DNA of 35,077 nt, taken from contig NEEC01000100.1 in assembly GCA_002189035.1 (NCBI GenBank), forward strand, positions 1 through 35,077. The letters are read 5' to 3'. The notes beneath the pieces are model-generated. The model was given only the letters and a program-made list of their open reading frames with translations. It made no database searches and had not been told where the DNA came from. The translations under genes were made by a program, and so were the position numbers. The stretch is from Utricularia gibba (lineage: Eukaryota > Plantae > Magnoliophyta). Shown here piece by piece: positions 104-32,546 of this stretch (position 1 is its first letter; the number at the start of each line of letters is the position of its first letter).

Positions 104-614
104 TGACCCCTGCAAGAAGTTTGCTGTGGAGTAAAAAGCATTGTCATTTTTCATTCCGTGAAGATTTCTTGCATGTTTTAGAGGGCATAAGCATATCAAT
201 ACGACAAGCAGAACAGTGAAAACAGCACGAAAAGCAGCCATATTAGCGATGCAGGGCAGAGACGGAACAGGTGTTGGGGAGGATGGCCTAATCCGAAAAC
301 AAAAGTGTTTATATATATAGATGGAGGCTATGATGAAGACGTTCAAATTCGGAAGGGAATGTGATGCCTATGCTGTTGAACCTCGTGCATGTATTGGACA
401 GGTGTGAAAACTATGAGGTTAGCCGCCACCCACATCCGAGACTGTATCTTTCTTGGAAGTTTCTTCGTCTAAAGAAGCCTTCACCTAGATTCATGGCTTG
501 GGTTTAAGAGTTAAGCCACTGTTAAAAAGGAGATCATATGGTGTAACCCTCGTAGACAAGAATCACTCTTTTTTTAAACGAACCAGACTGGCTTTCTCAA
601 CCCTCTAAACACCA

Positions 615-3600
615 TCATATCGCGGAATTGCAACTGCATGCAGAAGACATGGGAGGAAAGTAATAAAACTCGTTCTGAGTATATTTTACAAGTCTGACTG
701 GCTAGCATATTAGCCATTAATCTAGTAGCAGACATTAGTGGATGATGGAACATAAAGCATCCAGTACTCCAAAAAAAAAAAAAAAATTGCACAACTTTAC
801 CTTTCAATCTTCTCGATTCTTCCTTACTTTTCTACAAGATTCCTTCTTAGTCTCCTACTAGTTTTTGCTCTCTCTAGCGTTTCAAGAAACTTTCCTTCTC
901 CATGGAAGCTACCGGGAAAGAAGCGGTTTGGTGCAGCCAAATAGTGGTTGGTCGTTACTTTACCAGCCAGCGGCACCAGATTTTCGTTCGATTCTCCAGC
1001 CCTCCAAAACTGACCAAGTGCGCATGGCGTTGAATGCATGTTGCTATAGAAAAATCAACAGGACCCGTTGGACCAGGAAACTTGACCAAAACAATTGGGC
1101 CAACAAATTCCTCGAAAAGCAAGTGCAAGGCATCAGCAACAATACACATAGCTATCTATCAGCATTGATGATATGTTGTGGGTTTGGAGCAACGTTGGCT
1201 TGAGCTTGAGAAGTAAGTTTCAAACAGAGAACAGACTTAACAACAGGTAATACTTGGAAGTATTCAAACACTTCCTATGAAAGTAGACCGTTACAGTAGT
1301 TAGTGGGCTTCAGATGATGATTTGGACCTTTGGGCTTTTCTAGGTTGATGCCGGGCCTCATTCTCTAATCAACCCAGGTTTCGCTCTCCTCCAGAATCGC
1401 ACCATTACAGATAGACGCCGGTGTGCTGAGTTCTTCAGGACGTAACGCTGATGCAGCATAATCTAACACTCTCCTTGCTGCGAAGCTTCTGAGTTTTTTG
1501 TGGGACATTCCTTCATACCTACCTTGTCTCTTAGGTAAGCAAATCGTTTGGGCGGCAGGAATTTTGTAAGTAGGTCAGCAGCCTGCTCTTCAGTTTGAAT
1601 ATACTTGAGCGCGATTTCTCCATTTGATACAAACTCTCTAAGAGCATGATCGAACTCTGATATGTTTGCTCCTCCCGAATTGCGTTGGATTTTCCCTAGA
1701 GCAATTGCTGACTTATTATCGATCCAAAGGGTGGTAGCCCCGTGAGTTGGTAGGTCTATGTCTTCCAGAATTTTCCTGAGCCATATGGCATGTTTAGCAG
1801 CTTCCACTGCTGCAATGTATTCCGCTTCAGTGGTCGATAGTGCAATGATGTCTTGCTTCCTGGATGCCCAACTGAAGACTCCTGATCCGAATGTGAAGAG
1901 GTAACCGCTTGTGCTCCTTGAATCCTCAAAGCTACCTGCATAGTCAGAGTCAGTGAATCCAGATGAATTCATACCTGTGCCTTTTTTGAATGCTAGACCA
2001 TAGGCCATCGTTGAGTTCAAGTATTTGATGATCTGCTTGGCTGCGTCCATATGATGTTTGTGAGGATTCCGTAGGTAGCGAGAGAGATAGCTGACATAAA
2101 AACAAATGTCAGGTCTGGTAGCAGATAGGTATATAAGCGAGCCAATCAAGCTACTGAAGATTTTATCATTGGCAGAAGCTTCTTCGTTGATTTGATCAGG
2201 CTTCATGGCAGGTACACTAGCAGTCTTTGCATTACTCATGTGGTATTTTTTTATGAGATCAGCAGTATATTTGTGTTGGCTTAGGTAGATGCAATCAGGA
2301 GTATGCTTGATCTCTAGCCCCAAGAAGTAGCTCATTGTTCCTAGATCGCTCATCTCAAATGTAGTCATGAGTTGCTGTTTTTCTTGATTCAGTAGATGAT
2401 TGTCATTGCCAGTAAGAAGAATGTCGTCGACGTAGAGAGACAGAATGAGGTACTTCTTTTCGTTCTTCAACGTATAGAGTGTGGTGTCGTTTTTGCTCCT
2501 TTGAAAACCCTTGAATGAAAATGGGAGTCAATTCTGGTATACCAGGCCCGTGGTGCTTGCTTTAAACCGTATAGGGCCTTATGGAGTAGCAGGACTTTGT
2601 TTTCTGCTCCTTGTTTGACAAATCCAGGAGGCTGTTGAACATATACTTCCTCTTGTAGGGCCCCATTTAAGAAGGCTCTCTTGGCATCCAGGTGAAAGAT
2701 GTCCCAGTGATTGCAGGCAGCCAATGCTATCAGTAATTTGATGGTATCAAGGTGAGCAACAGGGGCAAAGGTCTCACTGAAATCAATCCCAGGTATTTGA
2801 GAATACCCCTGAGCTACCAGACGAGCTTTCAGTTTGTTCACAGTCCCATTTGCATTTAGCTTTGTGCGGAATATCCATTTCACACCTATTATTCTACGGT
2901 TGGGGGCTTGGATACTAATTCCCATGTCTCGTTTTTTTCAATTGATTGAATTTCAGAATCCATGGCAGCTTTCCAGGCCGGATCCTGGTAGGCAGAACTC
3001 CAGTCCGGAGGTTCTTGAGCAACTAGGCAGCGAGCATATATTTGGTTGATGTCTCTGTAACCTTGCACAGGAACTTCTCCATCGTCAATATAGGAATCAG
3101 TGTTGGTAGGCTGCTGAGTGAGTGGTGTATCTATTAGAGACGTTGAGCTGGTGGCGGGAGTAGGAGAATTATCCCTTAGATCATCATCCGTATCAGGAAA
3201 CGGCTCTTTAAACAGGTCGTTCCATGCATAGGAAGTAGGTATATTTTCTGGAGTCCAATCCCAGGATTTTTGTTCATCTACTAAGACATCCCGACTGATT
3301 ACGATTTTTTGTGTCATTAGATGCAGTACTCGATATGCCTTGGAGACGTCGCTGTACCCTAAGAAAATTCCGGTATCTGCCCGTTTATCCAGTTTGCCAT
3401 GGCGTTTTTCTGGAGGCACATAAATGTAACAGAGACTTCCAAAAACGCGCAGATGTTTCACTTGAGGAGGTGTCCCATACCAAGCTTCATATGGTGTTTT
3501 GTTAGGTAAAGAGGAAGTAGTACACCGATTTAGAAGATAGATTGACGTATTTATTGCTTCGCCCCAAAAATAGCTTGGCAAGGTTTTTTTGAAACAGGAG

Positions 3601-6558
3601 ACACCGGCTCATGTTCATGATGGTCCTGTTCTTGCGTTCTGAGGTACCGTTCTGCTGCGGAGTGTACGGAGCAGTTAACTCATGCTTGATCCCTTGAGAC
3701 TCACATAGAGTAATCAGCTCGGTGGGTGAGTATTCTCCACCGTTATCAGTTCTGAGTTTAACAATCCGTTCTTTGGTTTCATTTTCAACTGCAGATTTGA
3801 AGAGCTGGAAATAGTAGAGGACTTGAGATCGATGCTTCAAGAGGAAGATCCAGGCATATTTGGTAAAATCGTCAATGAACAGCAGGAAGTACCGGTTGCC
3901 ACTTGGAGTTGCACAGCTCATGGGGCCACACACATCGGAGTGCACAAGTTCCAATTTTCGAGAGCTTTTCCAGGTTCGAGATTCAAACGGAAATTTGCTC
4001 ATCTTTCCTTGCTGACATATAGAGCATATAGCTGTGTGGTGTTTCAGTTCTGAGATCCCATCAACCAGCTTGTGGCGCTGCATGTGAAGTAAGGTTTGTT
4101 GACATATGTGCCCAAATCGTTGATGCCAAGTTTCTGTCATTAGGCTGCTTAGACATAGGTCAGTCCTGTCACTGGGAGAAAAATTGATAGGATAAACTCT
4201 GTGATGTCGCTCTGCCTTAAAGAGTACTTTTCCTGTGGAGTCTTTAGTTGTGATGGAAGTACTGTCGTGTGTGTAGTTGATATTCTGATCCTGCAGTTGG
4301 CCATAACTGATGAGGTTGTGATGAGCTCTTGGCACATAGTACACGTCTTTGATAATTTTTCCAGATATGGAGATATTGTCAATTCCAGCGGGGATAAGTT
4401 TTTCCTGTCCAGCAGCTTGTAAAATTTTTATTTATGATAGAGAGTTCAAGGTTTGAAAGCAAGAAATATCATAAGTCAGGTGGTTGCTGCAGCCACTGTC
4501 TAGGTACCATTGCTTGTCTTTTGTGCATGATTCGTCGTTTGCAGATAGACTGGTGTGAGTTTCAGTAATAGTAAGAATCATATCACTCATAGCCTGGGAG
4601 GTTTCGGAGATACCAGCTACTGCTAATAATTCTTTTGCCTTTCTTTTTTCAGGACATACCTGCTCAATATGTCCTGTGGCAGAGCAATAGGTACACTTGT
4701 TAGATGGATTCCAGAAGCAGTCTTTGTTGAGGTGATTTTTTCCTTTGCAGAATTGGCAAGGTGGGTGAGGTCCTCTTTTCTCCCTTTTCGTCCCTTCATT
4801 TTGACTTGATCTATAGTTCATGTAGGCTGCTTGTAGGATTTTTTCTTGGGGCTTCTCTTGTTCTTCTAGCATATTGATCCTTTGTTCTTCACCCCGTAGA
4901 GTGTTCAGTAATTCAGATGGTGTCAAATTTGTGAGACTCCTTGTAGCAATGAGAACTCACTACTGGGCTGAACTTGGAAGGCATACTTGTGCATATTTTG
5001 TTAATAACTCTCTCGTCTTCGACTGTTCCTCCTAGTAGCTTGATTTTGCTAATAGGCTTGTTGAGTTTGTTTGCAAATGACTGAATGGAGTCTGAGTTTG
5101 ACATTCTCACCAGGTCAAATTCCCTCCAAAGGTTTAGTCTTTCTGATTGTCTTGAATTTTCGGTTCCTGAAAATTCCACTTCTAGTATTTTCCAAGCTTC
5201 CCTTGCAGTTTCGCAGTTAACAATCATCAGAAACATTTCATCAGTAAGTGAGCCATGAATTGCAACCAGCGCCTGCGAGTTAACCATTGTCTCTTCTTTG
5301 GTGAGTTCTCTTGTTTTTCCTTCTTTGTCTGTGGGTGGATCTTTGATTACTATGACCCATAGACCAAGAGCTTGCATGTAGCATTTCATTTTAGCTGCCC
5401 AGATAAGATAGTTCTTTCCATCGAACTGGGGTGGTTGTAGCCGGTTGAAATTGTTTGTTTTGTTGCTCATGTTGTTCCTGCGTTGTTAGTGATATAAAAA
5501 TGAAAGTAACGATGTGTGTGGTTGTGTGATGTGTTATACCTGCTTCATTGTTCGAAACAGGGCTCTGATACCATGATGATATGTTGTGGGTTTGGAGCAA
5601 CGTTGGTGCTTGAGCTTGAGAAGTAAGTTTCAAATAGAGAACATACTTAACAACAGGTAATACTTGGAAGTATTTAAACACTTCCTATGAAAGAGTCGAC
5701 CGTTGCAGTAGTTAGTGGGCTTCAGATGATGATTTGGACCTTTGGGCTTTTCTAGGTTGATGCCGGGCCTCATTCTCTAATCAACCCAGGTTTCGCTCTC
5801 CTCCAGAATCGCACCATTACAGATAGACGCCGGTGTGCTGAGTTCTTCAGGACGTAACGCTGATGCAGCATAATCTAACACGCATGAGAATCAAACTGCT
5901 TAAAAGTTTCCTGTGCAAGTGCATGCAGCTTACAATAGTGAGTTCGATGGTCCAAAACTAACTTCCTCGTTTAAATCCAAGTGCCTGAGGATGCTACAAT
6001 AGACTAGCGACCGGGGTTCCTGTCCCCCGGTTTCTCCATCGAATCAAATGCAGTGTTAGTTCTGGGATTGGGATTGCGTCACTGATTACACCACCAACCA
6101 AGTCTTCCCAACAATGAACAACTAAGAGACGGACCCCTGAGTTTTTTCTGGGCCAATATTGCATGCGTGTATCCGATATCCATCAGCACCGGCCCACCGG
6201 TGATCATCATAAATAAGCAAGTTTTATTAAAAATGAAAAAGCGATGGCCCATGTTGAGGGGGTGAGTTGGGCCCAACCCTACAGATAACACATGTTTTGG
6301 GGTCCAAAGAATTCACTTCGATACGTAAGATGCAAGTGCCAGTGCCAGCTGGTGAAGAGGTTGGCCCGAAGCTCATACGCCTCCTCTGGTTTGTCGGTGC
6401 GGGAGGTAATAGTTCGGAAATGAAATATTTAATCGAGATAGGAATTTTCTTAGCTCTTGTTCTGCGGCATTTGCATTCAGTTTTGTGCACCGCGGGGATC
6501 AACAAGTGGAAGGAATTAGGGAAGAAAGCGATGGCTGAGAAGGAGAAGCAGAGCCCAT
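615..6558 (-). CDS. Unidentified multi-exon host gene, fragmented by indels, hosting element A in an intron (proposed exons ~6558-5934, 1043-828, 633-615)
   Basis: Donor GTAAGC at 5933 and acceptor TTTTCTATAG at 1044 join in frame (phase 2) across element A, giving ...[28 protein letters not shown]...[20 protein letters not shown]. Donor GTAAGG at 827, acceptor CATGCAG at 634. The first exon needs several single-base restorations and has one in-frame TGA. Confidence 0.4.
1166..1468 (-). repeat. Element A 3' LTR (303 bp)
   Basis: Direct repeat of 5574-5880; reads TGTTAG...ATCATCA on the minus strand and directly follows the PPT. Confidence 0.96.
1463..5470 (-). pseudogene. Element A gag-pol, disrupted as sequenced
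   Basis: Six ORF pieces. In-frame TAA at 4432-4434 shortly after the protease motif; frameshifts near 4952, 3585, 2904 and 2511; compensating pair near 1691 and 1650 inside RNase H. Some may be sequencing errors. Confidence 0.8.
1469..1476 (-). other. Element A polypurine tract (AAGGAGAG)
   Basis: Purine run directly abutting the TG of the 3' LTR on the minus strand. Confidence 0.85.
5561..5573 (-). other. Element A primer-binding site, tRNA-iMet (TGGTATCAGAGCC)
   Basis: Canonical plant copia PBS directly after the 5' LTR with no spacer. Confidence 0.95.
5574..5880 (-). repeat. Element A 5' LTR (307 bp)
   Basis: Direct repeat of 1166-1468, differing by 5 substitutions and two 2-bp indels. 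Confidence 0.96.
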
Positions 6559-8660: not shown

Positions 8661-11600
8661 TTACGTGTTGCTATAATGTCTCACCGACGTCTCCAGCACC
8701 TCTCGGTTCGGGCAAACCATTTCTTTCACCCGGTTCCCTTTTCTGTATATCTTGAAGGTTGGTACTACCCTCACGTTCTCTGCTTGGGCAATCGCAAACG
8801 CCTCCTCAATATCCACCTTCAACAATAACAGCAAAAACCACAATAAGGTGAGGCTACATAGCACACACACACACACACACACCCCTCTGTTCTCCTCTAC
8901 CTTGAGAAAGTTAACATATGGGTATTTGGTGCATAATTTGTCCAGGAACGGCGACATCTGCTTGGATTCGAAATTGCAACTTGTTGTGAAATGGACCACC
9001 GAAGCACCTGCACGAAAGTTAAGATGTGCACACACACTCACCACGAATACCAAGCTGTCTATCCATACTAAAAGTATTTTTGGCTGCTTGATTTTGTTGG
9101 AGACTTGGTTGAACGTTGAGAGAATGTTGAAGTTTGTGGATATTGACTATTGTTTTTGGATCGAAAAGAACTTTCCTTTTTTTTCATAAAGCAAACAGGG
9201 ATTTATATAGATGAGGAGAGTTGCCCGTTGGATCATATCAGGCCTAAAATATGACCGTTGCCTTTAGTCTGTAGATTAGTCCTCTTGTTCATCTACTGTG
9301 TAGCAGCCAGAATTTACTAGGACTTCTTTCATGGACTGGGCTTCAGATGCTTCTTCTTGGGCCAGTAGTTTGGAATGTTGAGGCCCAAGTATGATAAGGC
9401 CTTTTTCCCAATCTAATTGAGGGTTGCTTCTCATGGGAGGAACAGAGGTCGCGCGCCATTCATCTTCGCGGGTTGAGACTTCCCGGATCTTCGTTGCTCC
9501 ACCACTTGCTGACATTCCTCCCTGAGGGAGTAATGAAGATCCGGCTGTTGTCACAAGAGGATTTCTCCGAATTCCCAGCATTTCTCTGATTCTGTTGAAA
9601 TTCCTTGGGAATAAGCATTTGGTGAGAATATCTGCAGGTTGCTCATCCGATGGTAAGTACTCAAGTTTAATCAGTCCTTCCTTCACATAATCTCTGAGTA
9701 TATGGTATTTAAGCTTGATGTGCTTGGTCCGACCGAACATCACAGGATTTTTTGCGATGCTAATGGCAGATTTGTTATCTATCTTGAGTATTATCGGTCT
9801 TGTAATTTGAATTTTCAGGTCATCGCATAATTTCACCAACCATTGCGCATGGTTGGCAGCAGCAGCTCCTGCGATGTATTCGGCTTCTGCGATGATTGTG
9901 CAGTGACGGCTTGTTTCTTGCTGTTCCATGAAAATACCGCTGATCCTAAGTTGAATAGATAGCCTGTGGTAGATTTACAATCTTGTTCGTCGCCAGCAAA
10001 GTCTGAATCAACAAATCCCTGCAAAATAGGGTTAGTACCTTTCTTGTAATATAAACCAAAGGAAGTTGTGGCCTTCAAATATTTCAGGATACGTGTTGCT
10101 ATTTCCAGGTGTGTGTTGTGTGGCTGATGCATGAATCTGGCCAGAAATGATACGGCGAAGGTTATATCCGGTCTAGTAGCAGTTAAATACATCAGAGCGC
10201 CAATGAGTTTCTGGTAGTTATGAGAGTCAACTGGATGAGAATTAAGGTCAGATAATTTCTTTCTAACTTCTGGTGAGAAAGGAGTAGTAGATACTTTTGA
10301 TGATTCCATGCTGTATTTTTTGAGTAGTTCCTCTGTATATCTACGTTGGTTCAAAAATATGAAGTCTTTATGTTGAATGATCTCCATTCCTAGGAAATAA
10401 CGTGCATGTCCCAGATTGGTGAGTTCAAATCTTTGCTGCAATAGCTTCTGTAATTCAGAAATTCGTTCTTCACTGCTGCCTGTGATTAGAATGTCGTCTA
10501 CGTATAAGGAGACAATAACTTTTCCTTGGATATCCTCAGATATGTATAATGTAGTATCATTTTGACTTCTTGTATATCCCAGCTCTAGAAAGAAAGTGTC
10601 AATGGTAGTATACCATTCTTTGGGGGCCTGCTTGAGTCCGTATAAAGCTTTATTTAATTTCAGTACATATTCTGGATTATCTCGGATGATGAAACCTGGA
10701 GGGGGGTTCACATATATGTCTTCGCTTAACTCTCCATGCAGAAAGGCCGTTTTTATGTCCAGATGATGTAAATACCACTTGTTGCAGGCCGCAAGTGCAA
10801 TAATCAGCTTAATGGTGTCTAATCTTGCCACCGGAGCGAAGGTTTCCAGGTAATCAATCCCTTCTTTCTGTAAATATCCCTTTACCACCAGTCTGGATTT
10901 TCTTTTGTTCAGAGTGCCATCAGGATTTAACTTGGGACGGAATATGAATTTTAGGTCCAGAGGTTTTTTCTGCTTCGGCTTAGGCACTGCTGTCCAAACG
11001 CCGTGTTTCTGGATGGAGTTGAATTCTTCGTCTATGGATTTCTTCCAATCTGGGTCAGCGAGAGCTTCCTGAACGCTTGCTGGTTCATAGGTGCTCAATG
11101 CCCTATCATAGATATCGTTGATTGGTGCATATCCTCGCACAGGTGAGCTGTCTTCATTTTGTTTCAGATCCATACATAGATGATGTGGGGTGTAAGGAAC
11201 CCCTTCTTGTCCGTAATCTTCCAGGTAACTTTGCCTTTGAGGTGAGGGAATGAGTATAGGATTTCTTGCTGCTAGGTTGGGTCCTCGGTTTTGAGTTTCT
11301 TCATCTTCTCCTGATGAGTTTTCTTCTTCTGATGTATCGGTTGATGATAGCTCAGTGATTTCCTTTGGATTTCTGATGCTGTTGATGAGGGTTTCATGAC
11401 ATTCTAGAGTTTGTTCAGGTATGTGCTCTGAGTCTGCATCCTCATATCTCATGTCTTCGATAGTAGTGGCCAAGGAGCCTTCTGGAAACTGTTGGGTATT
11501 AACAGGATCTTCTGTTGTACAGGGGCTTTCGGGCTCAATTGTTCTCGGAACATCAGGACTAGGTGGTGGCAAATTTTCGCTATTAGAGACTTCTAGGATG

Positions 11601-14600
11601 TCTGTCGTTGACACCGAGTGTCCTCTTAAATCTGTTGAGTTTGAGGCTCGATCATTTGAGTTTGTGATTTGATCTTCTAGGGTTGCTTGGACCCTTAACA
11701 TATTTGTTCCTGAGGCTGTCATTTCTTGTTGAATAGAGTCTTGACTAGGACTGTTCCTCGCTGGGTGGATGCTGAGGGGTTCGGTTGTTGCATCATGTCC
11801 TTGTTGAGGGAATAAATTCCATATATTTTCTGAATAAGAATGATTTTTGTCATGTGTTGTCGAGGAACTCCAGTTGTAAATTCTAGTCTCGTCTACTGTT
11901 ACATCACGACTGAGTTCCACCTCATTTGTTCTTAGATTCAGTACCCTGTAGGCTTTACTTGTATTGCTATATCCCAGGAAAATTCCTTCATCAGATCTTT
12001 TGTCCCATTTTGATCTCTTCTCCTTTGGAATGTATATATAGCAGGGTGATCCAAATACCTTCATGTGATCTAGGCTTGGAATTTTGTTGTACCATAGCTC
12101 ATAAGGAGTTTTACAGTCTTTATTTCCTTTGGTTGGCAGGCGGTTCAACAGATACACGGCTGTGTTGACTGCTTCGCCCCAGAATTCTAGAGGTAAGTGT
12201 TTTTGATAGAGTAGACACCGAGCCATATTGACTATTGTCCTGTTCTTTCGTTCACATATGCCGTTCTGCTCTGGCGTATATGGCGTTGTAAACTGGTGAG
12301 TAATACCATTTGTCTCACAAATGTGTCTCAGTTCAGTTGATTTGTACTCACCTCCGTTGTCTGACCGGAGTGTTAGAATCTTACTATTGCTTTGAGTTTC
12401 TGCAAGGACCTTGAAGACTTGGAAGTGGTGCAAAACCTCTGATTTATGCTTCAGGAGATAGATCCAGGTATACTTTGAATATTCGTCAATAAAGATCACG
12501 TAATATTTGTTGCCGGCTCGAGTAGGAGAGGCCATGGGCCCACAGACGTCACTGGTAACAACTTCCAATTTTTTCTGAGAATGAATGCTGGACTTAGGGA
12601 GTGGTGTTCGGCTCATCTTCCCTTGAAAGCATATTCTGCAGTGTTTTTCCTCAGGAATTATATTAGGAATCCCCTCTGCCAGGTTTCTCTTCTTCATGGA
12701 TATAAGGGAGGCATAGTGATGGTGACCTAACCGTTGGTGCCAAATCTCAGATGATTCTAGGGACTTGAGGCAAATGTTGTAATCGATGGATGTAGCATTC
12801 GGAAGCAGTGGAAAGACCCTATCAGTCATAGCAACCGTAAGGAGTATATTATCTTCTTCATCTAATATTTTGCACTCATTACTTTCCAGATGAACTTTCA
12901 TCCCCTTTTCAACCAGCTGGCCAGTGCTTAGTAGATTGTGGTAGGCCTGGGGCACCAGATACACGTCTGTGATCTTGATTAATTTCTGGACAGTTTCAAG
13001 GCAAACTGTTCCTTGACCGATGACCTGTAAGTGATTTCCATCAGCAATTTCGATTACTTTCCCAGTTAGCTCGATGAAGGTTGTGAATAGACTCTTGTCG
13101 TTGGTTATATGATGACTGCATCCGCTATCGATAAACCAGATGTCTTGTTTCCTTAGATCCACAAATGATGTGATTAGAGTTTTGCGGCGCAGAGAGTAAA
13201 TATCAATCTTCTTCTTATTCATTTCAGCTGCGAGATTTACATCATTCATAGCGCTAGTAAGTTTGTCCTTAGGATCTGCAGCCTTTCCTCCAATCTGATG
13301 GTATTTTTTCAGGGGACACACTTTGTCCACATGACCTTGGAGAGAACAGTACAGGCATTTGGCGTCAGGGCTCCAGAAACATTGTGTTGGTGAATGGCCT
13401 TTTCGCTTGCAGAATGGGCATGAATCTCCAGTACTTGGTTTCTCAATTTTTGCTTGAAAGATCACCGGTTCATTTGATGATTGAGAACCATAGCCTTTCT
13501 GATTTTCTGTTGCCTTGAAGGCAAGTTCCTGGCCTTCACCAAGTCCGACTTCAACTTCGGATTCACTGAGTCTTTCTAGTAGTTTTCTGGAGGATATGGA
13601 GTGAATGCCTGTGACCCGCAAAGTAGTGACTACAGGGGCAAAGGACCGCGGTAGGGAACTGAGTATTTTTGATTTAATTCTTCTGTCTTCCAAGGGCTCT
13701 CCCAAGGTCTGTAACTCAGTGACAATTTTGATTAGCGTTTCTGAAAAATGAGAGATACTCATACCTGGTAAGAATTTCAGGTTGTCAAAGAGCTCCCATT
13801 GACGTTGAATGCGGCTCTCACGGGCTTCCGTATCCTCTCCGTAGAATTCCTCCAATTTTTTCCAGATGTCTTTGGGACTTTTCAGTAGCATAACACGGTT
13901 GAACACTTCTTCAGATAAGGCTTGATCCAGAGCATACTTAGCTTTCTTTACTTGAGCATCTGTGAGTTTGAGACTTTCTGCTGTGGCTATTTCAGAGGAG
14001 TCTGGACGTACAGGATCCACCACAGACCATAAGTCGTTCATTTGCAGGTAACTTTCCATTCGTACTGCCCAAGAAGCGTAGCGCTGACCAGTGAAGATTG
14101 GAGGAGCTTGTTGGAGGGCTGCCATTCTGAGAGACTGCAATGATAAGAGGAGATGGGAGTCGGTGAAGTATCTTCACGTCGGGTTCACCATAAAAGTATT
14201 TTTGGCTGCTTGATTTTGTTGGAGACTTGGTTGAACGTTGAGAGAATGTTGAAGTTTGTGGATATTGACTATTGTTTTTGGATCGAAAAGAACTTTCCTT
14301 TTTTTTCATAAAGCAAACAGGGATTTATATAGATGAGGAGAGTTGCCCGTTGGATCATATCAGGCCTAAAATATGACCGTTGCCTTTAGTCTGTAGATTA
14401 GTCCTCTTGTTCATCTACTGTGTAGCAGCCAGAATTTACTAGGACTTCTTTCATGGACTGGGCTTCAGATGCTTCTTCTTGGGCCAGTAGTTTGGAATGT
14501 TGAGGCCCAAGTATGATAAGGCCTTTTTCCCAATCTAATTGAGGGTTGCTTCTCATGGGAGGAACAGAGGTCGCGCGCCATTCATCTTCGCGGGTTGAGA

Positions 14601-17010
14601 CTTCCCGGATCTTCGTTGCTCCACCACTTGCTGACACATACCACCCCACCAAACTATCTCCGGTAGACGATGAGGTGAAACAAATACTTACATGGGGATG
14701 ATATAGCAGCTTGGAATTGCTCAACACTCGAAACAGATTCCACTTCCCCGCCAAATTTCAGGTTTGATACATCTTCACCGAGGGATTTCTTCAACGCTAC
14801 TTGCACATGAAACAGGGATTCGGCAATATCATTGTCATTTGGCATTTCTTTTCTCAATGCCTCATAGTCCCTAACAGCCTCCTTCCATCGCTCCAGCTAT
14901 CCACAATCACCAAGTTCTGATTAGAAGTTGGGCATTACAAAATTTTAAACAAGGCATCAACCAACCTACCTTAGAATATGCAGCTGCCCTGCGCATTAAG
15001 GCCTTGGTGTAATGGGGTCGAACACGAAGTGCCTGGTTGCAATCATCTACACATCGTTCCCATTGCCCAAGCATAAACCAGCAGGCTGCTCTGTTGCAGT
15101 AGAGAACCGAATTCGTGGGATCCATCCGGAGACCTTCAGTATAGGCTGAACAAGCCTCTGTGAACCTGCCTGACTTGAATAAGTCGTTGCCATGAGTACG
15201 CGCTCGAGTCACTATCTTCACATTGTTGAGCATCGTTGAGATTTCAGAATTATTAGGGTCCCTTTTTCCAGCCTTCTCAATGTCCATAAGTGCATCATCA
15301 AACCTGCAAATGTTCATCATTCAATGGGTAGGCTTCAAAAACTCCCCCGCTCGAGGAACTGCTTTTATTTTCTTACTCACCTTCCTCTAGCTAGCTCAAT
15401 CTCGCTTTTAACGAAGAAAATATAAGCCTCTGAAAGCATCCCAAATATTGTCGACTGCATGCTTCCAGAGGTTCCACTGACATCCACATTAGAAAAAGCC
15501 GAAACAGCATCATCCAATTGATGGAGCTTCAGCAAGGCCTCAACTCTACATGCCCAAAACTGCACTAGCAACAAGTCGTATCATGAGAAACGAACTGCAT
15601 CAGGCGAAAAAATTTCGCTATAAACTCCTGGAGACCTGAGGCGAGACTTCAACTCCGCATGCAATGGCAGCATCTATCTCTTTCAAGGCGCTTCTCCAAT
15701 CGCCAGCTCCACGAGCATCACCGCACATGCTAAGATGCTTTTCCACAGATTGAAGTTTATGCAAGAGCGTTGAATCCTGTTGTATTCCAGGAAAAAAAAT
15801 GTGCTTCCTGGCATTTTCAATCTGCCCCAGGCTGCAATTCTTGAAATTACTACGCAAGTATATAAACAGAGAATATCAATGCAGAAAAAGGAATTCCAAT
15901 AATTCACGATTGCCTATAACCCCAAGCGCCTGGGGCAACGATAATGAGAAACCAACAAGCAGATCAGAATCACTATATTCTAAAGCACGAAACGTTAGAA
16001 CACGCGAAAGCTTACCGCCGTAGGGAGCTAACAAACAAAGGATAATTACATCACTAAAGATTCGGCCTTTTTATTGTAAAATGCGAACCAACCGGCAAAG
16101 CTTACCTAAGAAATAGAGATCCAAGACGATGGCGGGCCCTCGCGTATCCAGGATCCAACTTAACAGCCATTTGACACTCTACCGCCGCCTCAGAAAGACG
16201 CTTCAAACCTATTAGAGCAGCGGAACGGTTGAACCGATATGCAGGGTTACTGGGCGACATAGCAATGGCCTTGTCATAGAAGGTCAAAGCTTCCGCAAAG
16301 TTACCCCTTTTATGATTCTCGTTACCCATTCTTCTAAACTCCTCCGGATCACTGTTACTGCTACACGCAGTTTTCTTCACCGGATCCGCACCAACCAATA
16401 GCCTTTTAGAGTAACTTAGGGGTCGGCATTCCTTACTGGGTTTCGGTGAAACACATCCCCGCAATACGCTGCCGTTGCCGTAGTTTGACGAACCAGAACC
16501 CAAGACGTCGGGTCTGCTTGATCTGTTCGTGATGCCGGATTTCAAAATCCTGCCAGAGGGGCAAATGTTTCCAGCGGGAAGCACATTGACGGCTGGGGAC
16601 GTGACGGAGCCAGAACCGAAGGAGATAGGCGAGCGGAACACTGCAGACTCCGAGCGGCTATGGACGTGCCTGATTACTCGGGCCGGGGAAGGCGAACTTT
16701 CGACCGAAAGCTCGCCGGAATGGCTGTTGGGATTTGAATCAGATTTTCTTGGCAGATCCAAATTGGTACCCGTTGAAACCCGGTCTGGGAAGGATCCGGA
16801 GGAACTAGAGCTGCTACTCGTTGTAGTGGTGGTGCTAGTGAGCCCACGACCAAGTCCTGTCCGAAGCGGCGAAATAGGCGAGCCCAGATGGATTTCTCTA
16901 AAATCTCGCTTATTCTGGGTCTGGTCTTCCTGACGCACTAATTTGCTTCTCAACGAATCTGAAAGTGAGTTCAAGTCCGAACCCAACCGAGGGTTGGGTT
17001 TACTCGCCAT
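8661..17010 (-). CDS. TTL1: Tetratricopeptide-repeat thioredoxin-like protein; exons 17010-16106, 15831-15636, 15559-15381, 15303-14970, 14896-14692, 9007-8901, 8816-8661
   Basis: Ser-rich disordered N-terminus ([31 protein letters not shown]), TPR motifs ([28 protein letters not shown]) and a C-terminal thioredoxin-like domain ([14 protein letters not shown]). GT-AG junctions keep frame. Paralog number is tentative (TTL1/TTL2 clade by recalled synteny). Confidence 0.9.
8862..8881. repeat. (CA)10 microsatellite in the last TTL intron
   Basis: Direct reading. Confidence 0.9.
9064..9068. repeat. Element B target-site duplication, left copy (CATAC)
   Basis: Identical to 14637-14641. Confidence 0.95.
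9069..9514 (-). repeat. Element B 3' LTR (446 bp)
   Basis: No difference from 14191-14636 on manual comparison; reads TGTCAGC...ACTTTTA on the minus strand. Confidence 0.97.
9276..14125 (-). CDS. Element B gag-pol polyprotein, about 1616 aa if one base is restored at ~9890
   Basis: The first true ATG is at 14125 (the ORF-track start at 14140 is TTG). The 1435-aa and 217-aa ORFs are joined by one missing G in ...QSS(A)EAEY. The stop lies inside the 3' LTR. Confidence 0.92.
9515..9523 (-). other. Element B polypurine tract (AGGGAGGAA)
   Basis: Purine run directly abutting the TG of the 3' LTR. Confidence 0.85.
14173..14190 (-). other. Element B primer-binding site, 18 nt, complementary to the 3' end of cytosolic tRNA-Trp
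   Basis: Minus strand TGGTGAACCCGACGTGAA abuts the LTR. The plus strand TTCACGTCGGGTTCACCA matches the plant tRNA-Trp(CCA) 3' end as recalled, and has T-stem + acceptor strand + discriminator + CCA geometry. Confidence 0.85.
14191..14636 (-). repeat. Element B 5' LTR (446 bp)
   Basis: Identical to 9069-9514 on manual comparison. Confidence 0.97.
14323..14332 (-). promoter_or_regulatory. Putative TATA box of element B 5' LTR (CTATATAAAT; second copy at 9201-9210)
   Basis: Matches the plant TATA consensus in element orientation, about 130 nt from the LTR end. Confidence 0.65.
14637..14641. repeat. Element B target-site duplication, right copy (CATAC)
   Basis: Identical to 9064-9068. Confidence 0.95.
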
Positions 17011-17965
17011 TCTCACACGCTATACGGCTTCAATCTTCTCTTCTCTGTCCACAGCCTGAACTCCGCCGTTTGGCAATGCGAGTGGACCAATGTGGAAAGA
17101 ACGGTGAGAAGAAGAATAAAGAAGCAGAAGTCACTGCGTCACGAGGCAGCTTTCAGAGCTGTTCTTCTTTCTTCTCTCCACAAATTATTGCTGTTCTTTT
17201 TCCTCGGGGTTGTTTACACATCGGCTTTGCATGTTTTCCTCTAAACAGGCACGCCACTGGGCTCTGGTGTCAAAGATGCAAAAAATGAATTAAGCCACCT
17301 CTTGGGAGGTGTTGATTTGGAGCCAAAGTCCACTGGCAAAAGAAGGCGAAGAAAGGGAAGGAGCGCTGTCCAATTTGTTTTAGCAGCATCGCATATTATT
17401 AATGACGGACGGAGGGGGCTGGCCGTAGATGATAGCTCTCCTAATGAAAATGAAGGTGGTGCTGTGCCGGTGCATAATAATGAATTATGCGCACAATAAA
17501 AGGAGAATCCCGCCCAGGGAGTCAAGTCGGTCACGCCAGCCCACGATGCCATACGATTAATCAGAGAAACATTTCGTAAGAAAGAAATGTGTGAGCAATT
17601 TGCTTGCACGCCGAATCGACCCGCTCACATGCCCTCGCGTCCTTGGATTGTACAATAAGCAGGGGGCAGCCGCAATTGTAGCTTGGGCCCAGGCCTAGCC
17701 AGTCGTCCTTGATAGCCAGCCCATTCTCTTCCTCACCAGGAATCTTGCGTCCCTCCCGCCCCCAGCCCAGCACATCTTCTTCACTTTAGGGATGAGGTTG
17801 CTCCACTGCTACCTGCTTTCAGTTCCCGCCTCTGCTCCTGGTATTTTTTTTTTTTTTTCATCTTCACTTGAGTGCTGGTTTTTCATCATTATAATTCCCA
17901 TGAATTGTATTAGGTTTGGTGCAACTCTATGTTTACAGCTTTGTTTGAAATGTGGACGTGCAGTG

Positions 17966-20489
17966 ATGATAAGTGGACTAAGATTTGCGCCACTTCGTAC
18001 GGTTACCCCGTTCCACGCGGTTCGCCGATACACCTGCGAGTGCAGAGGCTTTCCCACCTCCTATTCGGCCCTGCAAGATGGGCGGCAGAAGGTTGTGGTG
18101 ATATCTGGACCCACAGGGGCAGGAAAGAGCAGGCTTGCGTTGGAAATTGCAAAAAGACTCAACGGAGAAATTGTTAGCGCTGACTCCGTTCAGGTTTTTG
18201 TACCTTCAGAAATCGTGGAACGCCGTTGGTTCAGGTACTCATTTTGTTTTCTTTTTGGCTATTCCGTTGTGTTCCAGGTATACAGAGGTCTGGATGTCGG
18301 GTCAGCAAAACCATCTTCAAGCGAAAGAAAGGTTCTATATGTGCATTTTCTGAATTGAATTCTAGTGATATGCAGCAGTTGGAATTTAGCGCTCGACGCT
18401 CTTTGTTTTCCTTATCCACCGTTTTTTTTTTCAGGAAATACCGCATCATTTGATTGATATACGGCATCCTGCTGAAGGTGATCGCCATGAAATGTCGGTT
18501 GATAACGTGCTCGAATTTATTTTCTCTACTTTTTTATTGTCACTTCCTAATGCGGTTCATTGGGTGGACGGAAACATAAAAAAAATGTGGTTTTCAGAGT
18601 ACTCTGCTGGTGATTTCTTTGTGGATGCAAGACGGGTAACGGATGAAATACTCGGTAGAGGGCGTGTTCCAGTTATCACCGGTGGAACAGGGCTATACCT
18701 GAGATGGTATGCTTGCTTGTGCCACGGCTTGTCTCATTACACTAGAAGTTGCTTGGTTAAATGAGTTTATATGGAATTGCAAAGTACAATAGCTGAAGTC
18801 TTTCAATCTTCGCTGCCGTGAAAGGTTCATTTACGGGAAGCCTGATGTCCCGAAATCATGTTCTGAGACAATTCTGGAAGTTAACTCGGAGCTGTCTGAT
18901 TTACAAAGAATTGGAGACTGGGACACTGCTGTGCAATTACTTGTTGAAGCTGGTGATCCTGGTGTTCAATCATTGGCTGTCAATGATTGGTACAGACTGC
19001 GCCGCAGACTTGAAATTCTCAAGGTGTGAGTTCAACAATAATTTTATAGTTATTTGGCTACATTTTGTATTCCCCAAGATTACTTGGTTGTGTGCCTCAC
19101 AGTTCTGTTCCATGATCAGTGCCGTATTATTTTATGTAGCTCCGTATACCAACGCAATGATGTGTTAAATTAATATTTGTACCAATTCAGTCTAGTGGTA
19201 TGCCTCCGTCAGCATTCAAGGTACCCTACAATGCTTTCAAGGGGAACCTTGAGTCAGGGGAAGAAGATGCTATTTGCCCCAACTTGGCATTTGGAGAGAA
19301 TCAAGAAAGCCGGTCTAGCAGTTTAAAGTATGAATTTGTTTGTTTTTTTCTCACCACTCAAAGGCTTGAGCTCTATAGATCAATTGACTTGCGGTGTGAA
19401 GACATGCTTTTAGGTGATGCGAATTATGTCGGTGTACCGTTCCTTTGTTTTTGTCTGATGTTGTCAAGTCACCATTCTTCAAGATGTAAATGCTAAACTT
19501 TGAGTTTTCTAATTGTAGATGCCGGACTTCTGTCCGAAGCAAAATGGCTGCTTGATTTGGGTCTGTCTCCAAACTCAAACTCCGCAACACGAGCTATCGG
19601 TTACAGACAAGTATGTTATCGGTTGCATGCTTGCTTAGAACATAATCTTATCTTTTGAGATGGAGCACTGTGACCAGTGAAGGAAAAGTTGAGCCCATGG
19701 CCCCTTTCTTCATTTTTTGTAGGCAATGGATTTCCTACTTATGTCAAAAGAACAAGGATGCTGCAGTTTGTACAGAGAGTTCTTTAGTTTTCTAAGAGAC
19801 TTTCAAAAACATCTAGGTAATTTGATTCTACTTCCTTGTCCTCGCCAAGTGTTCAGTTTGAATCCCCGTGGTCGGTTGAATGATTTAACAGTTCGCTATG
19901 CCCTTGAATGCTTTTGACAGGAACTTCGCCAAAAGGCAGTTGACGTGGTTCCGGAGCGAGCCAACTTATCAATGGATCGATGCCTCCAAACCCTTGGTAT
20001 GTTGTCTGCTGGATTTTATGATAGCCTGTGGATTTCTGTTCTGGTGAAGTCACTGGACCCGAGGACCATAACCAAAAATAGGGGGGGCATTTTCAAGTGT
20101 TGACACCTCAACATCATTAAGCTCCAGATGCTTCTGCTGGAGCTTCATAAACTTTCATTGATCACAGGAAATGATCAGCAGCTTCATTTGCGATGCGTAT
20201 AACTATAGCGGTGAAACTGGGAGACTTAGAGTACCCGAGCGGCTGGAGATGAAGAAGGATATGGCGGATCAGAGGGAAATCCGTCAGCTAAAATCTTACC
20301 GCCCTAAAAACAGGTTATATTTTTGTCACTTTGGTGTCATTCAACCTTCTATGCTGTTGTTTTTGTTCTCCGACTCCACTGAGGTTGGTTGTTGTATTCT
20401 GAAGGTATTTTATATCAAAAGAAGATTGTGATCCCGTTATCGAGTGGGTGCGCGCGACGCTGGGAGAAACTACCGCCGTCTCCATCTGA
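17966..20489 (+). CDS. IPT9: tRNA dimethylallyl (isopentenyl) transferase 9, multi-exon
   Basis: [91 protein letters not shown]. Last exon ends ...WVRATLGETTAVSI*. Confidence 0.93.
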
Positions 20490-31985: not shown

Positions 31986-32546
31986 TCACTTGACCCCGCC
32001 GGGAAATGGCGCATGATTTGATCCCTTGGGGATGCCAAGCATCAGACACGCGTAAAGCTCTTCAAGCTTGAGAGAATCCCCATTTCCCCAGTTCCCAGAG
32101 TAGCCAACATCGTCGTTTAAGCTCGAACAGACTGTGGTGGTGGTTTCGTCGCCGCCGCTGGACAGGGAGGACCCAAAGACGGGGTTTTGAAACTGTGACC
32201 TGAAAGCAGTAGTATCTTGAGTAGCCCGTTTAAGCTCTGCTCTCAGACTCTCCACTTGTTTCTCTAGTTGCCTTTTGTCGGCAAGAGCGGCTTCCAGACG
32301 CAGCTGCAGGGCCCCGTAGTCGAGCTCCAAGCTCTGGTTCTTCCACCTCGCTCTCTTGTTCTGGTACCAGATGGCAATTTGGCGCGGTGGTACACCCAGC
32401 TCCCGAGCTAACTGGAACTTCCGCTCAGGTTCCAGCTTCTTACCGGCGATGAAGCTGGCTTCCAGGACTCGTACTTGGTCTTGAGTCAGCCTCTTCTTCT
32501 GCAGTTTCAAGGCGTGGTGGCTCTTCTGGCTGTGTTGAAGGCTCAT
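31986..32546 (-). CDS. ATHB52: HD-Zip class I homeobox-leucine zipper, ATHB52-like, intronless, 186 aa
   Basis: [16 protein letters not shown]...[38 protein letters not shown] followed by leucine heptads. Confidence 0.85.

Follow-up and report, generated by a model that had tools for sequence, protein, structure and literature searches.

A young Ty1/copia retrotransposon with a tRNA-Trp primer binding site and TG...TA termini in Utricularia gibba

Introduction

In a survey of 5410 plant copia elements, all copia lineages with a complete tRNA as primer had tRNA-Met, and the exceptions were half-tRNAs, self-priming, or tRNA-Leu in the lineage Gymco-III (REXdb, PMC6317226). Among the dominant primer types listed there, tRNA-Trp appears for two gypsy groups only, TatI and Phygy, and for no plant copia lineage. 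Ale, the REXdb name for Retrofit/Hopscotch, has an average length of 5145 bp, and 77% of its members have tRNA-Met (REXdb, PMC6317226). With regard to the termini of the long terminal repeats (LTRs), TGTA is one of the seven noncanonical motifs sought by LTR_retriever, and elements that depart from TGCA are mostly copia elements with short LTRs that lie near or inside genes (bioRxiv 10.1101/137141). There are 941 TGTA copia copies in lotus, where non-TGCA copia elements overall are enriched in introns (PMC9804982). Here, we describe a copia element, termed element B, that occupies 5568 bp of the minus strand (9069-14636) of a 35,077-nucleotide stretch of DNA from Utricularia gibba (contig NEEC01000100.1; the whole stretch is referred to as the window), and that combines TG...TA termini with a primer binding site (PBS) for tRNA-Trp.

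A sequence-only reading of the window had proposed B as a candidate new copia family on the basis of four traits, namely a PBS not matching initiator tRNA-Met (iMet), a TA right end, a pol frame that runs through the unique 3′ region (U3) of the LTR, and a long linker between integrase (INT) and reverse transcriptase (RT). It took iMet as the plant copia norm and TGTA as a recognized motif, and both premises are borne out by the published surveys (PMC6317226; bioRxiv 10.1101/137141). We consider it quite probable that B is a young Ty1/copia element of a small divergent clade that also holds a neighboring element, A, and the database protein P0297, and that it is Trp-primed, TA-ended, frameshifted, and a probable offshoot of Ale-type elements.

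Results

Boundaries and Termini of Element B

Element B was delimited by repeat finding and direct comparison. The long open reading frames (ORFs) between its LTRs are all on the minus strand, so B reads from right to left in the window, and on its own strand the order is GTATG, 5′ LTR, PBS, a 65-nt leader, an ATG at 14125, gag-pol, a purine tract, 3′ LTR, and GTATG. The 5′ LTR (14191-14636, minus strand) and the 3′ LTR (9069-9514, minus strand) are both 446 bp long, read TGTCAG...CTTTTA, and are identical at 446/446 positions. The two copies of the target site duplication (TSD), CATAC on the plus strand and GTATG on the element strand, lie directly outside the LTRs at 9064-9068 and 14637-14641. 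A perfect 5-bp TSD is obtained only with this boundary, because a shift of either LTR boundary by one base breaks it, and the TG...TA reading of the ends is therefore sound. Thus, the identical LTRs, the perfect TSD, and the TG...TA ends that had been read from the sequence all stand.

Within the LTR, a TATA box, TATATAAA, is read at LTR position 306, which is about 14324-14331 in the 5′ LTR (minus strand). The polypurine tract (PPT) region (..CTCAGGGAGGAA; 9515-9526, minus strand) lies directly 5′ of the 3′ LTR, with AGGGAGGAA adjoining the LTR, and relatives of B have AAGGAGGAG or AAGGGGGAG at this position. B has the two direct LTRs, the 5-bp TSD, the PPT, and the PBS (in this case an 18-nt tRNA-Trp site) of a Ty1/copia element. 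As in the TGTA group of copia elements, TG..TA termini are found together with a 5-bp TSD, a short LTR, and a location in or near a gene, which for B would be an intron.

The Primer Binding Site Matches tRNA-Trp

The PBS of B, TGGTGAACCCGACGTGAA (14173-14190, minus strand), abuts the 5′ LTR with no spacer and is complementary to the 3′-terminal 18 nt of tRNA-Trp(CCA). To identify the tRNA, we searched metagenome contigs for a 15-mer that complements the PBS apart from CCA and ran ARAGORN on 60 matching loci. All of the tRNA genes that end at a 15-mer match (11/11, in 8 loci) are tRNA-Trp(CCA), and the common 72-nt tRNA-Trp(CCA) gene with CCA added is complementary to the PBS at 18/18 nt. Counted from the 3′ end of the tRNA, the match stops one base before canonical position 58. 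The standard iMet site, TGGTATCAGAGC, was not found in the 65-nt leader of B, and ARAGORN predicted no tRNA gene within the window. The assignment of the PBS to tRNA-Trp rather than to iMet is thus confirmed. Plus-strand strong-stop synthesis copies 18 nt of the primer, after which a modified base blocks it. Since the PBS has exactly the length of this copy, we infer that tRNA-Trp primed the replication cycle that made B. At the same site, a perfect 6-bp hairpin (GTGAAG-ATA-CTTCAC; window 14163-14177, minus strand) extends over the five final bases of the PBS and is part of the predicted fold.

Relatives of Element B

Element A (1166-5880, minus strand), a degenerate copia element of 4715 bp with many broken ORFs, lies 3.19 kb from B. 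Its LTRs (1166-1468 and 5574-5880, minus strand) are 97-99% identical with one indel and have TG..CA ends, its TSD is imperfect (ATGCG/ATGCT), and its PBS (5562-5573, minus strand) is the standard iMet site. It is located ~2.5 kb downstream of a TTL-like gene. A and B have about 50% amino-acid identity overall (range 41-60%), and at the nucleotide level they have only a single 417-nt stretch in common, at 67.6% identity, with no similarity between the LTRs. By the 80-80-80 rule for membership of one family, the two elements fall apart.

Matches outside the window were sought among about 15 billion proteins overall. A word-index search of 5.8 billion clustered proteins with the whole B polyprotein returned best identities of 35-48%. 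An exhaustive search of 1.84 billion representatives with the RT and RNase H (RH) region found one match at ~60%, P0297, which is encoded on a 1.27-kb Logan contig (L121) from run SRR2033663, a run of which a literature search found no mention. A word-index search with RT-RH added further proteins at 52-54%, including one from a Sesamum radiatum element, so that all matches but P0297 are at or below 54%. The nearest named proteins are automatically annotated as RE1-, RE2- or TNT1-like, and RE1/RE2-like RTs, again including Sesamum, match at ~48-52%. No second copy of B with LTRs and PBS appeared in the protein searches, and nothing exceeded ~60% identity. Additionally, the second ORF of B and an exon of its host gene had no exact match in the contig collection, and a scan of viral contigs with the B RT found no relative. 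Judged by these searches, B is a Ty1/copia element without a close relative in the protein collections.

Phylogenetic analysis places A and B together in both of the regions compared. In the integrase tree they are sisters (SH-like approximate likelihood ratio test, SH-aLRT, 99) and each is the best match of the other, at 53%. In maximum-likelihood trees of RT-RH, B pairs with P0297 (SH-aLRT 100) and A joins them at 95-98; the two elements thus belong to the same clade in the INT and the RT-RH trees. For tree building, the broken stretches of A and of a metagenome element, L039, were joined with X. The pair of B and P0297 sits on a long, well-supported branch beside A, inside a larger angiosperm copia clade. 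The rows of A, B, and P0297 are all on long branches, and some attraction is possible, though the two domains agree. A is the closest full-length relative of B in the INT as well as the RT trees. As far as these alignments and trees go, A and B are separate families within one small clade. The sequence-only reading had treated A as an internal control of the same lineage. This is upheld in that A is canonical on all four traits and is the neighbor of B in the trees, whereas the identity of ~50% makes the two members of one clade and not of one family.

Beyond A, the relatives examined have iMet or iMet-like primer sites. The Sesamum relative has an iMet PBS and TA..CA ends, the Citrus relative an iMet PBS and TG..CA ends, the Theobroma relative an iMet PBS and a ..CA end, and the Trifolium relative an odd iMet-like PBS and TG..CA ends. 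The Sesamum radiatum element (JACGWJ010000011.1; L122:5015-9825), the closest named RT relative at 52%, has the TSD ATGCT, and its iMet PBS follows a 1-nt spacer. The Trifolium repens copia element (CM063275.1; L125:2632-7282) has 293-bp LTRs that are 100% identical and the TSD GTTCC, and its PBS, TGGTATTTAAGAGC, is unlike the standard iMet site. The element has been active recently, and its primer site is either imperfect or unassigned. Given that A is canonical on all four traits and that the clade is iMet-primed and CA-ended, the Trp PBS, the TA end, the lost pol stop, and the long linker of B are derived. The size, the short LTRs, and the RE1/RE2-like best matches of B suggest that it is probably of Ale-type origin. 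Most Ale elements (77%) have a PBS complementary to tRNA-Met, and the tRNA-Trp PBS of B departs from this.

Coding Content, Frameshift, and Integrase Linker

The main gag-pol ORF (9833-14125, minus strand) encodes 1430 amino acids (aa) from the ATG at 14125 and ends at a premature stop (9833-9835) inside RNase H. On the same strand it contains GAG (13556-14059; Pfam Retrotran_gag_2 at aa 23-190 and DUF4219 at aa 11-36), the protease (PR) region (12899-13138; Pfam Pol_BBD at aa 330-409, with a DSG motif in the translation), the integrase (11879-12772; Pfam gag_pre-integrs, rve, and SH3_retrovirus, aa 452-749), the C-terminal region of integrase with the linker (11000-11878), and the RT (10277-10999; Pfam RVT_2 at aa 1043-1283, E = 1.4e-75). 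The RNase H region (9555-10276, minus strand) is recognized by homology and is divided between two reading frames, the remainder being encoded by a second ORF (9276-9929, minus strand) of 217 aa that also carries a tail of ~95 aa past the usual end of pol. INT lies upstream of a copia-type RT, and the order GAG-PR-INT-RT-RH, as read from Pfam and, for RNase H, from homology, is that of copia elements. B is also small and has no other long ORF outside gag-pol, as is characteristic of Ale elements (~5.1 kb, without extra ORFs).

Alignments of four homologs to B follow frame -1 as far as 9890, resume in frame -3 at 9842, and end at ~9555-9570. There is a single change of frame in pol, which is confined to a 48-nt interval inside RNase H (9842-9890, minus strand), and its position is not a homopolymer run. 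The sequence-only reading had missed this change. Because of this frameshift the pol domains are interrupted, and the copy of B as sequenced is not autonomous and lacks a complete RNase H.

The gap between SH3_retrovirus and RVT_2 is 294 aa in B, as opposed to 72-109 aa in five ordinary copia polyproteins and about 115 aa in element A, which confirms that the INT-RT linker is long. The extra residues number ~200 relative to the homologs, an about threefold enlargement of the C-terminal part of integrase. This extended region is rich in Ser, Thr, Glu, and Pro, contains no Pfam domain, and looks disordered. In the element that encodes P0297, the open frame reaches RVT_2 at residue 157 and contains no SH3 before it, and the linker is therefore longer than 156 aa. 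As a long linker is found in this element too, its enlargement probably predates B. The ends of contig L121 (30 nt each, 1-30 and 1245-1274) are reverse complements of one another, which is probably an assembly artifact, and the first residues of its open frame are unreliable.

Other tRNA-Trp Primer Sites

Matches to the Trp 15-mer in the metagenome contigs are preceded by TGG in 25/125 cases, compared with ~2 expected by chance, and these TGG-preceded matches are retroelement primer sites. Several are of gypsy type: L049, L064, L081, L112, and many short ERZ1034xxx contigs show the order RVT_1, RNase H, and integrase and have an identical Trp PBS, which is preceded by ..CGACATCTT. L064 holds two such sites 6.5 kb apart. 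The gypsy-type loci probably represent the Trp-primed non-chromovirus groups described for mosses.

A further element has the same 18-nt Trp PBS upstream of PR-INT-RT remnants in the copia order. It is present in two contigs that are 99.9% alike, L002 (Ga0115851_102789; minus strand, PBS at 5097 of the reverse complement) and L039 (Ga0181464_1003561; 375-4115). The element is degenerate, no LTR pair was found within the contigs, and it differs from B in that its PBS follows a ..GTAAACA end and a 2-nt TT spacer, whereas B has no spacer. With 31-43% identity to B, it falls outside the clade of B in the tree. The same motif of LTR end plus PBS is carried by L084 and L113. Since this copia element is unrelated to B and both have a Trp PBS, recruitment of tRNA-Trp by copia-type elements appears to have happened at least twice. 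The L002/L039 element makes B less unique, yet it supports the stability of a Trp switch.

Two rival scenarios concern the primer site of B. In the first, B is a one-off aberrant copy of an iMet-primed TG..CA parent, in which tRNA-Trp mis-primed a single cycle and the change at the U5 end, the loss of the pol stop, and the frameshift are replication errors. We regard this as unlikely, although it accounts for several observations: only a single copy has been seen, the frameshift is a clear defect of the replication type, an exact 18-nt PBS is the trace expected from a single primer swap, and canonical traits are found both in A, which is the nearest relative of full length, and in the wider clade. 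On the other hand, the primer sites for iMet and Trp have no more than TGGT in common, so that mis-priming and plus-strand transfer, if they follow the retroviral mechanism, would be very inefficient, and four independent rare changes in a single cycle are unparsimonious. Furthermore, B is diverged from A by about half of its residues, the linker trait is old because P0297 already has it, and an unrelated copia-type element with the same PBS indicates that a stable switch to Trp is possible.

In the second scenario, B is a recombinant that took its U5 end and PBS, or a whole LTR, by template switching from a co-packaged Trp-primed element such as a Ty3/gypsy element. In its favor, tRNA-Trp is used by the plant gypsy groups TatI and Phygy (PMC6317226) and gypsy-type elements with an identical 18-nt PBS are common in the metagenome contigs, and sequence swapping among LTR retrotransposons has been reported in work cited in PMC9804982. 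We nevertheless hold a recombinant origin to be very improbable. The PPT and LTR start of B, GGGAGGAA followed by TGTCAG, resemble those of its copia relatives, AAGGAGGAG followed by TGTTAG or TGTTGA; the PBS of B abuts the LTR, whereas the gypsy-type loci end differently; and no donor sequence is at hand. Thus, we favor a Trp-primed copia element of the clade of A and P0297 over both scenarios.

The Open Frame in U3

The pol proteins of the homologs end at ~9555-9570, and the second ORF of B extends ~95 aa beyond this point. Its last 79 codons lie within U3 of the 3′ LTR, and its stop (9276-9278) is ~67 nt before the TATA box. In all five relatives compared, the stop of pol falls among the first 6 nt of the 3′ LTR: TGT-TAG (LTR nt 4-6) in element A, TAT-TAG in the Sesamum radiatum element (L122), TGT-TGA in a JGI contig (L123) and in the Trifolium element (L125), and TGA in the Citrus element (L127). 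The LTR of B starts with TGTCAG and is in a different frame compared with the relatives, so that the conserved stop is gone.

It is conceivable that the U3 frame is functional, either as an added C-terminal module of pol or as a separate small protein encoded by the LTR. Some retroviruses place accessory genes in U3. From the LTR start, B has 78 stop-free codons in the pol frame, compared with 27 and 17 in the other frames, and the frame fits into U3 in that it ends before the TATA box. However, dinucleotide shuffles yield an open run of 78 codons at a rate of 2.3% in that frame and 6.5% when any frame is counted, which is uncompelling for one sequence, and one copy gives no measure of conservation. 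Moreover, the tail has no Pfam match, every relative stops at the start of the LTR, and in B the tail is cut off from gag-pol by the frameshift. Function of this frame therefore seems to us highly unlikely, and the U3 tail is, rather than a new domain, most likely a tolerated read-through that followed the loss of the stop. The proposed U3-encoded extension of pol consequently survives in part: the open frame does enter U3, but in this copy it is separated from the gag-pol ORF.

Age of the Insertion and Its Surroundings

The absence of differences between the LTRs (0/446) gives a 95% upper bound of ~0.26-0.48 million years for the age of B (at 1.3e-8 or 7e-9 substitutions per site per year). 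We see only a slight chance that B is in part an artifact, with identical LTRs from consensus collapse or from polishing with mis-mapped reads, which can yield perfect LTR identity, and a frameshift from a base-calling error, of which a single-base frame change is the commonest long-read type, because the frame change lies outside a homopolymer run, the perfect TSD and the clean junctions between LTRs and flanks point to a real insertion, and neither the PBS nor the ends nor the linker hinges on single bases. B was also described as very recent and recently active; the insertion is indeed young, but since the copy is frameshifted, "active" fits the source of B and not necessarily B itself.

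B is flanked by parts of a gene on the same strand. ORF and Pfam readings identify exons with tetratricopeptide repeats (TPR; 16105-17016 and 14910-15320, minus strand) and a thioredoxin exon (8664-9053, minus strand), and TPR with a C-terminal thioredoxin is the architecture of TTL-like proteins. No ORF crosses the reconstructed empty site of B, and the apparent acceptor AG of the thioredoxin exon is at 9008-9009, ~55-60 nt downstream of B. For these two reasons B likely lies in an intron of the TTL-like gene, and interruption of an exon, which was considered as well, is disfavored on the same grounds. Such a position fits the known habit of non-TGCA copia elements. The insertion may truncate or mis-splice the TTL-like gene.

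Genes are densely packed in the window, whose GC content (41-51%) is rather high for a eudicot. The window also contains the start of a tRNA isopentenyltransferase-like gene (17792-18355, plus strand) and an ATHB-52-like homeodomain-leucine zipper gene (31989-32546, minus strand), whose best matches are in Lamiales, at most 71% (Sesamum). From these matches the host plant is placed in Lamiales, among the species missing from the annotated collections. A search of Rfam found no family match in the window.

Discussion

The evidence assembled here is best accounted for by a young, divergent, Trp-primed copia element, and we propose the following course of events. Within the past ~0.26-0.48 million years, B would have inserted into an intron of a TTL-like gene in its Lamiales host. 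In the replication round before this insertion, tRNA-Trp(CCA) and not initiator tRNA-Met would have primed minus-strand DNA, and the PBS would represent exactly the 18 nt that are copied from the primer before modified base 58 halts plus-strand strong-stop synthesis. The integrase would have accepted a U5 end of TA in place of CA, and translation may have continued for 79 codons into U3 after the stop at the LTR start was lost. In Ty1 and Ty5, the C-terminal part of integrase selects the target site. By analogy, the enlarged C-terminal region of the B integrase might influence the choice of target. The frameshifted copy itself may be the defective product of an error-prone cycle, or it may have been mobilized by the proteins of an intact sibling.

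Several points weigh against this account or limit its reach. Outside the PBS, complementarity to tRNA-Trp of the type of the Ty1 boxes or of the Rous sarcoma virus U5-TψC interaction amounts to one 7-mer, which is at chance level (54% of shuffles), and the RNA fold of R, U5, PBS, and leader is not more stable than that of shuffled sequences (z = +1.1). The surroundings of the PBS therefore bear no independent sign of long adaptation to tRNA-Trp. Finally, the account is drawn from a single, frameshifted copy.

A broader hypothesis, which we put forward tentatively and consider somewhat less probable than its opposite, is that B and P0297 represent an undescribed angiosperm copia sublineage. 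This sublineage would have split from iMet-primed Ale-type elements, would have fixed a Trp primer permanently along with the TA end, an about threefold longer integrase C-terminus, and a pol end in U3, and would have transposed into an intron within the last few hundred thousand years. Among the four traits, only the long linker is visibly common to B and P0297.

Taken together, LTR retroelements have frequently switched primers. In plant copia elements, in contrast, the primer tRNA is treated as a constant at the level of the lineage, from which B departs. Literature searches for the PBS sequence and for tRNA-Trp in connection with copia elements returned only gypsy cases and the REXdb survey, and no report of a tRNA-Trp-primed copia element. 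What is new here is a copia variant that is divergent and recently inserted and in which the primer tRNA as well as one end are derived, whereas the TG..TA motif was already known. B beside its canonical sister A forms a natural pair for studying a change of primer and the accompanying changes in U5, integrase, and leader. The significance of the finding is limited by its being one defective copy, by the fact that TGTA is already catalogued, and by the statistical weakness of the U3 frame. Annotation rules that expect iMet and TG..CA can mislabel or down-rank copies like B. The stronger expectation of the sequence-only reading, that LTR finders restricted to TG...CA would miss B, is weak: TGTA is handled by LTR_retriever, and a common LTRharvest setting, the motif TGCA with one mismatch allowed (PMC10025401), would keep B.

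Comparison with known systems places B between groups that each share some of its features. Non-TGCA copia elements, which include the lotus TGTA group, Tos17 (TG..GA), Hopscotch (TA..CA), and AtRE1 (TA..TA), resemble B in their short LTRs, 5-bp TSD, and insertion in introns. The lotus TGTA group has the same TG..TA ends as B, and some non-TGCA copia elements also have identical LTRs and hence can transpose (PMC9804982; bioRxiv 10.1101/137141). They differ in primer, in that those reports mention no non-Met primer and the word "tRNA" is absent from the text on lotus (PMC9804982). At 446 bp, the LTR of B somewhat exceeds those of the TGTA group, which average 288 bp. With respect to the primer itself, B resembles the plant gypsy groups TatI and Phygy and the avian sarcoma/leukosis retroviruses, all of which use the 3′ end of tRNA-Trp as minus-strand primer. 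The Trp-primed gypsy elements differ from B in belonging to another superfamily, with the order RT-RH-INT and an RVT_1-type RT, and TatI and Phygy have a 4-bp TSD (PMC6317226).

The closest overall likeness is to Ale-type elements (Retrofit/Hopscotch, RE1/RE2-like), with which B shares the order GAG-PR-INT-RT-RH, a size of ~5 kb, short LTRs, a 5-bp TSD, a PPT ending in GGAGGAG-like purines, and an LTR start of TGT.AG, which normally holds the pol stop. B differs from them in having tRNA-Trp where Ale has tRNA-Met, as well as in its TA end, its linker that is ~200 aa longer, and the lack of a stop at the LTR start. There are precedents for such a change of primer among copia elements. Yeast Ty4, a member of the copia superfamily, is primed by tRNA-Asn. 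In gymnosperms, 2/3 Gymco-III elements have tRNA-Leu (PMC6317226). Both cases indicate that copia machinery can work with a full-length non-iMet tRNA, as we propose for B. Gymco-III and Ty4 differ from B in using other tRNAs and in living in other hosts, neither of which is an angiosperm.

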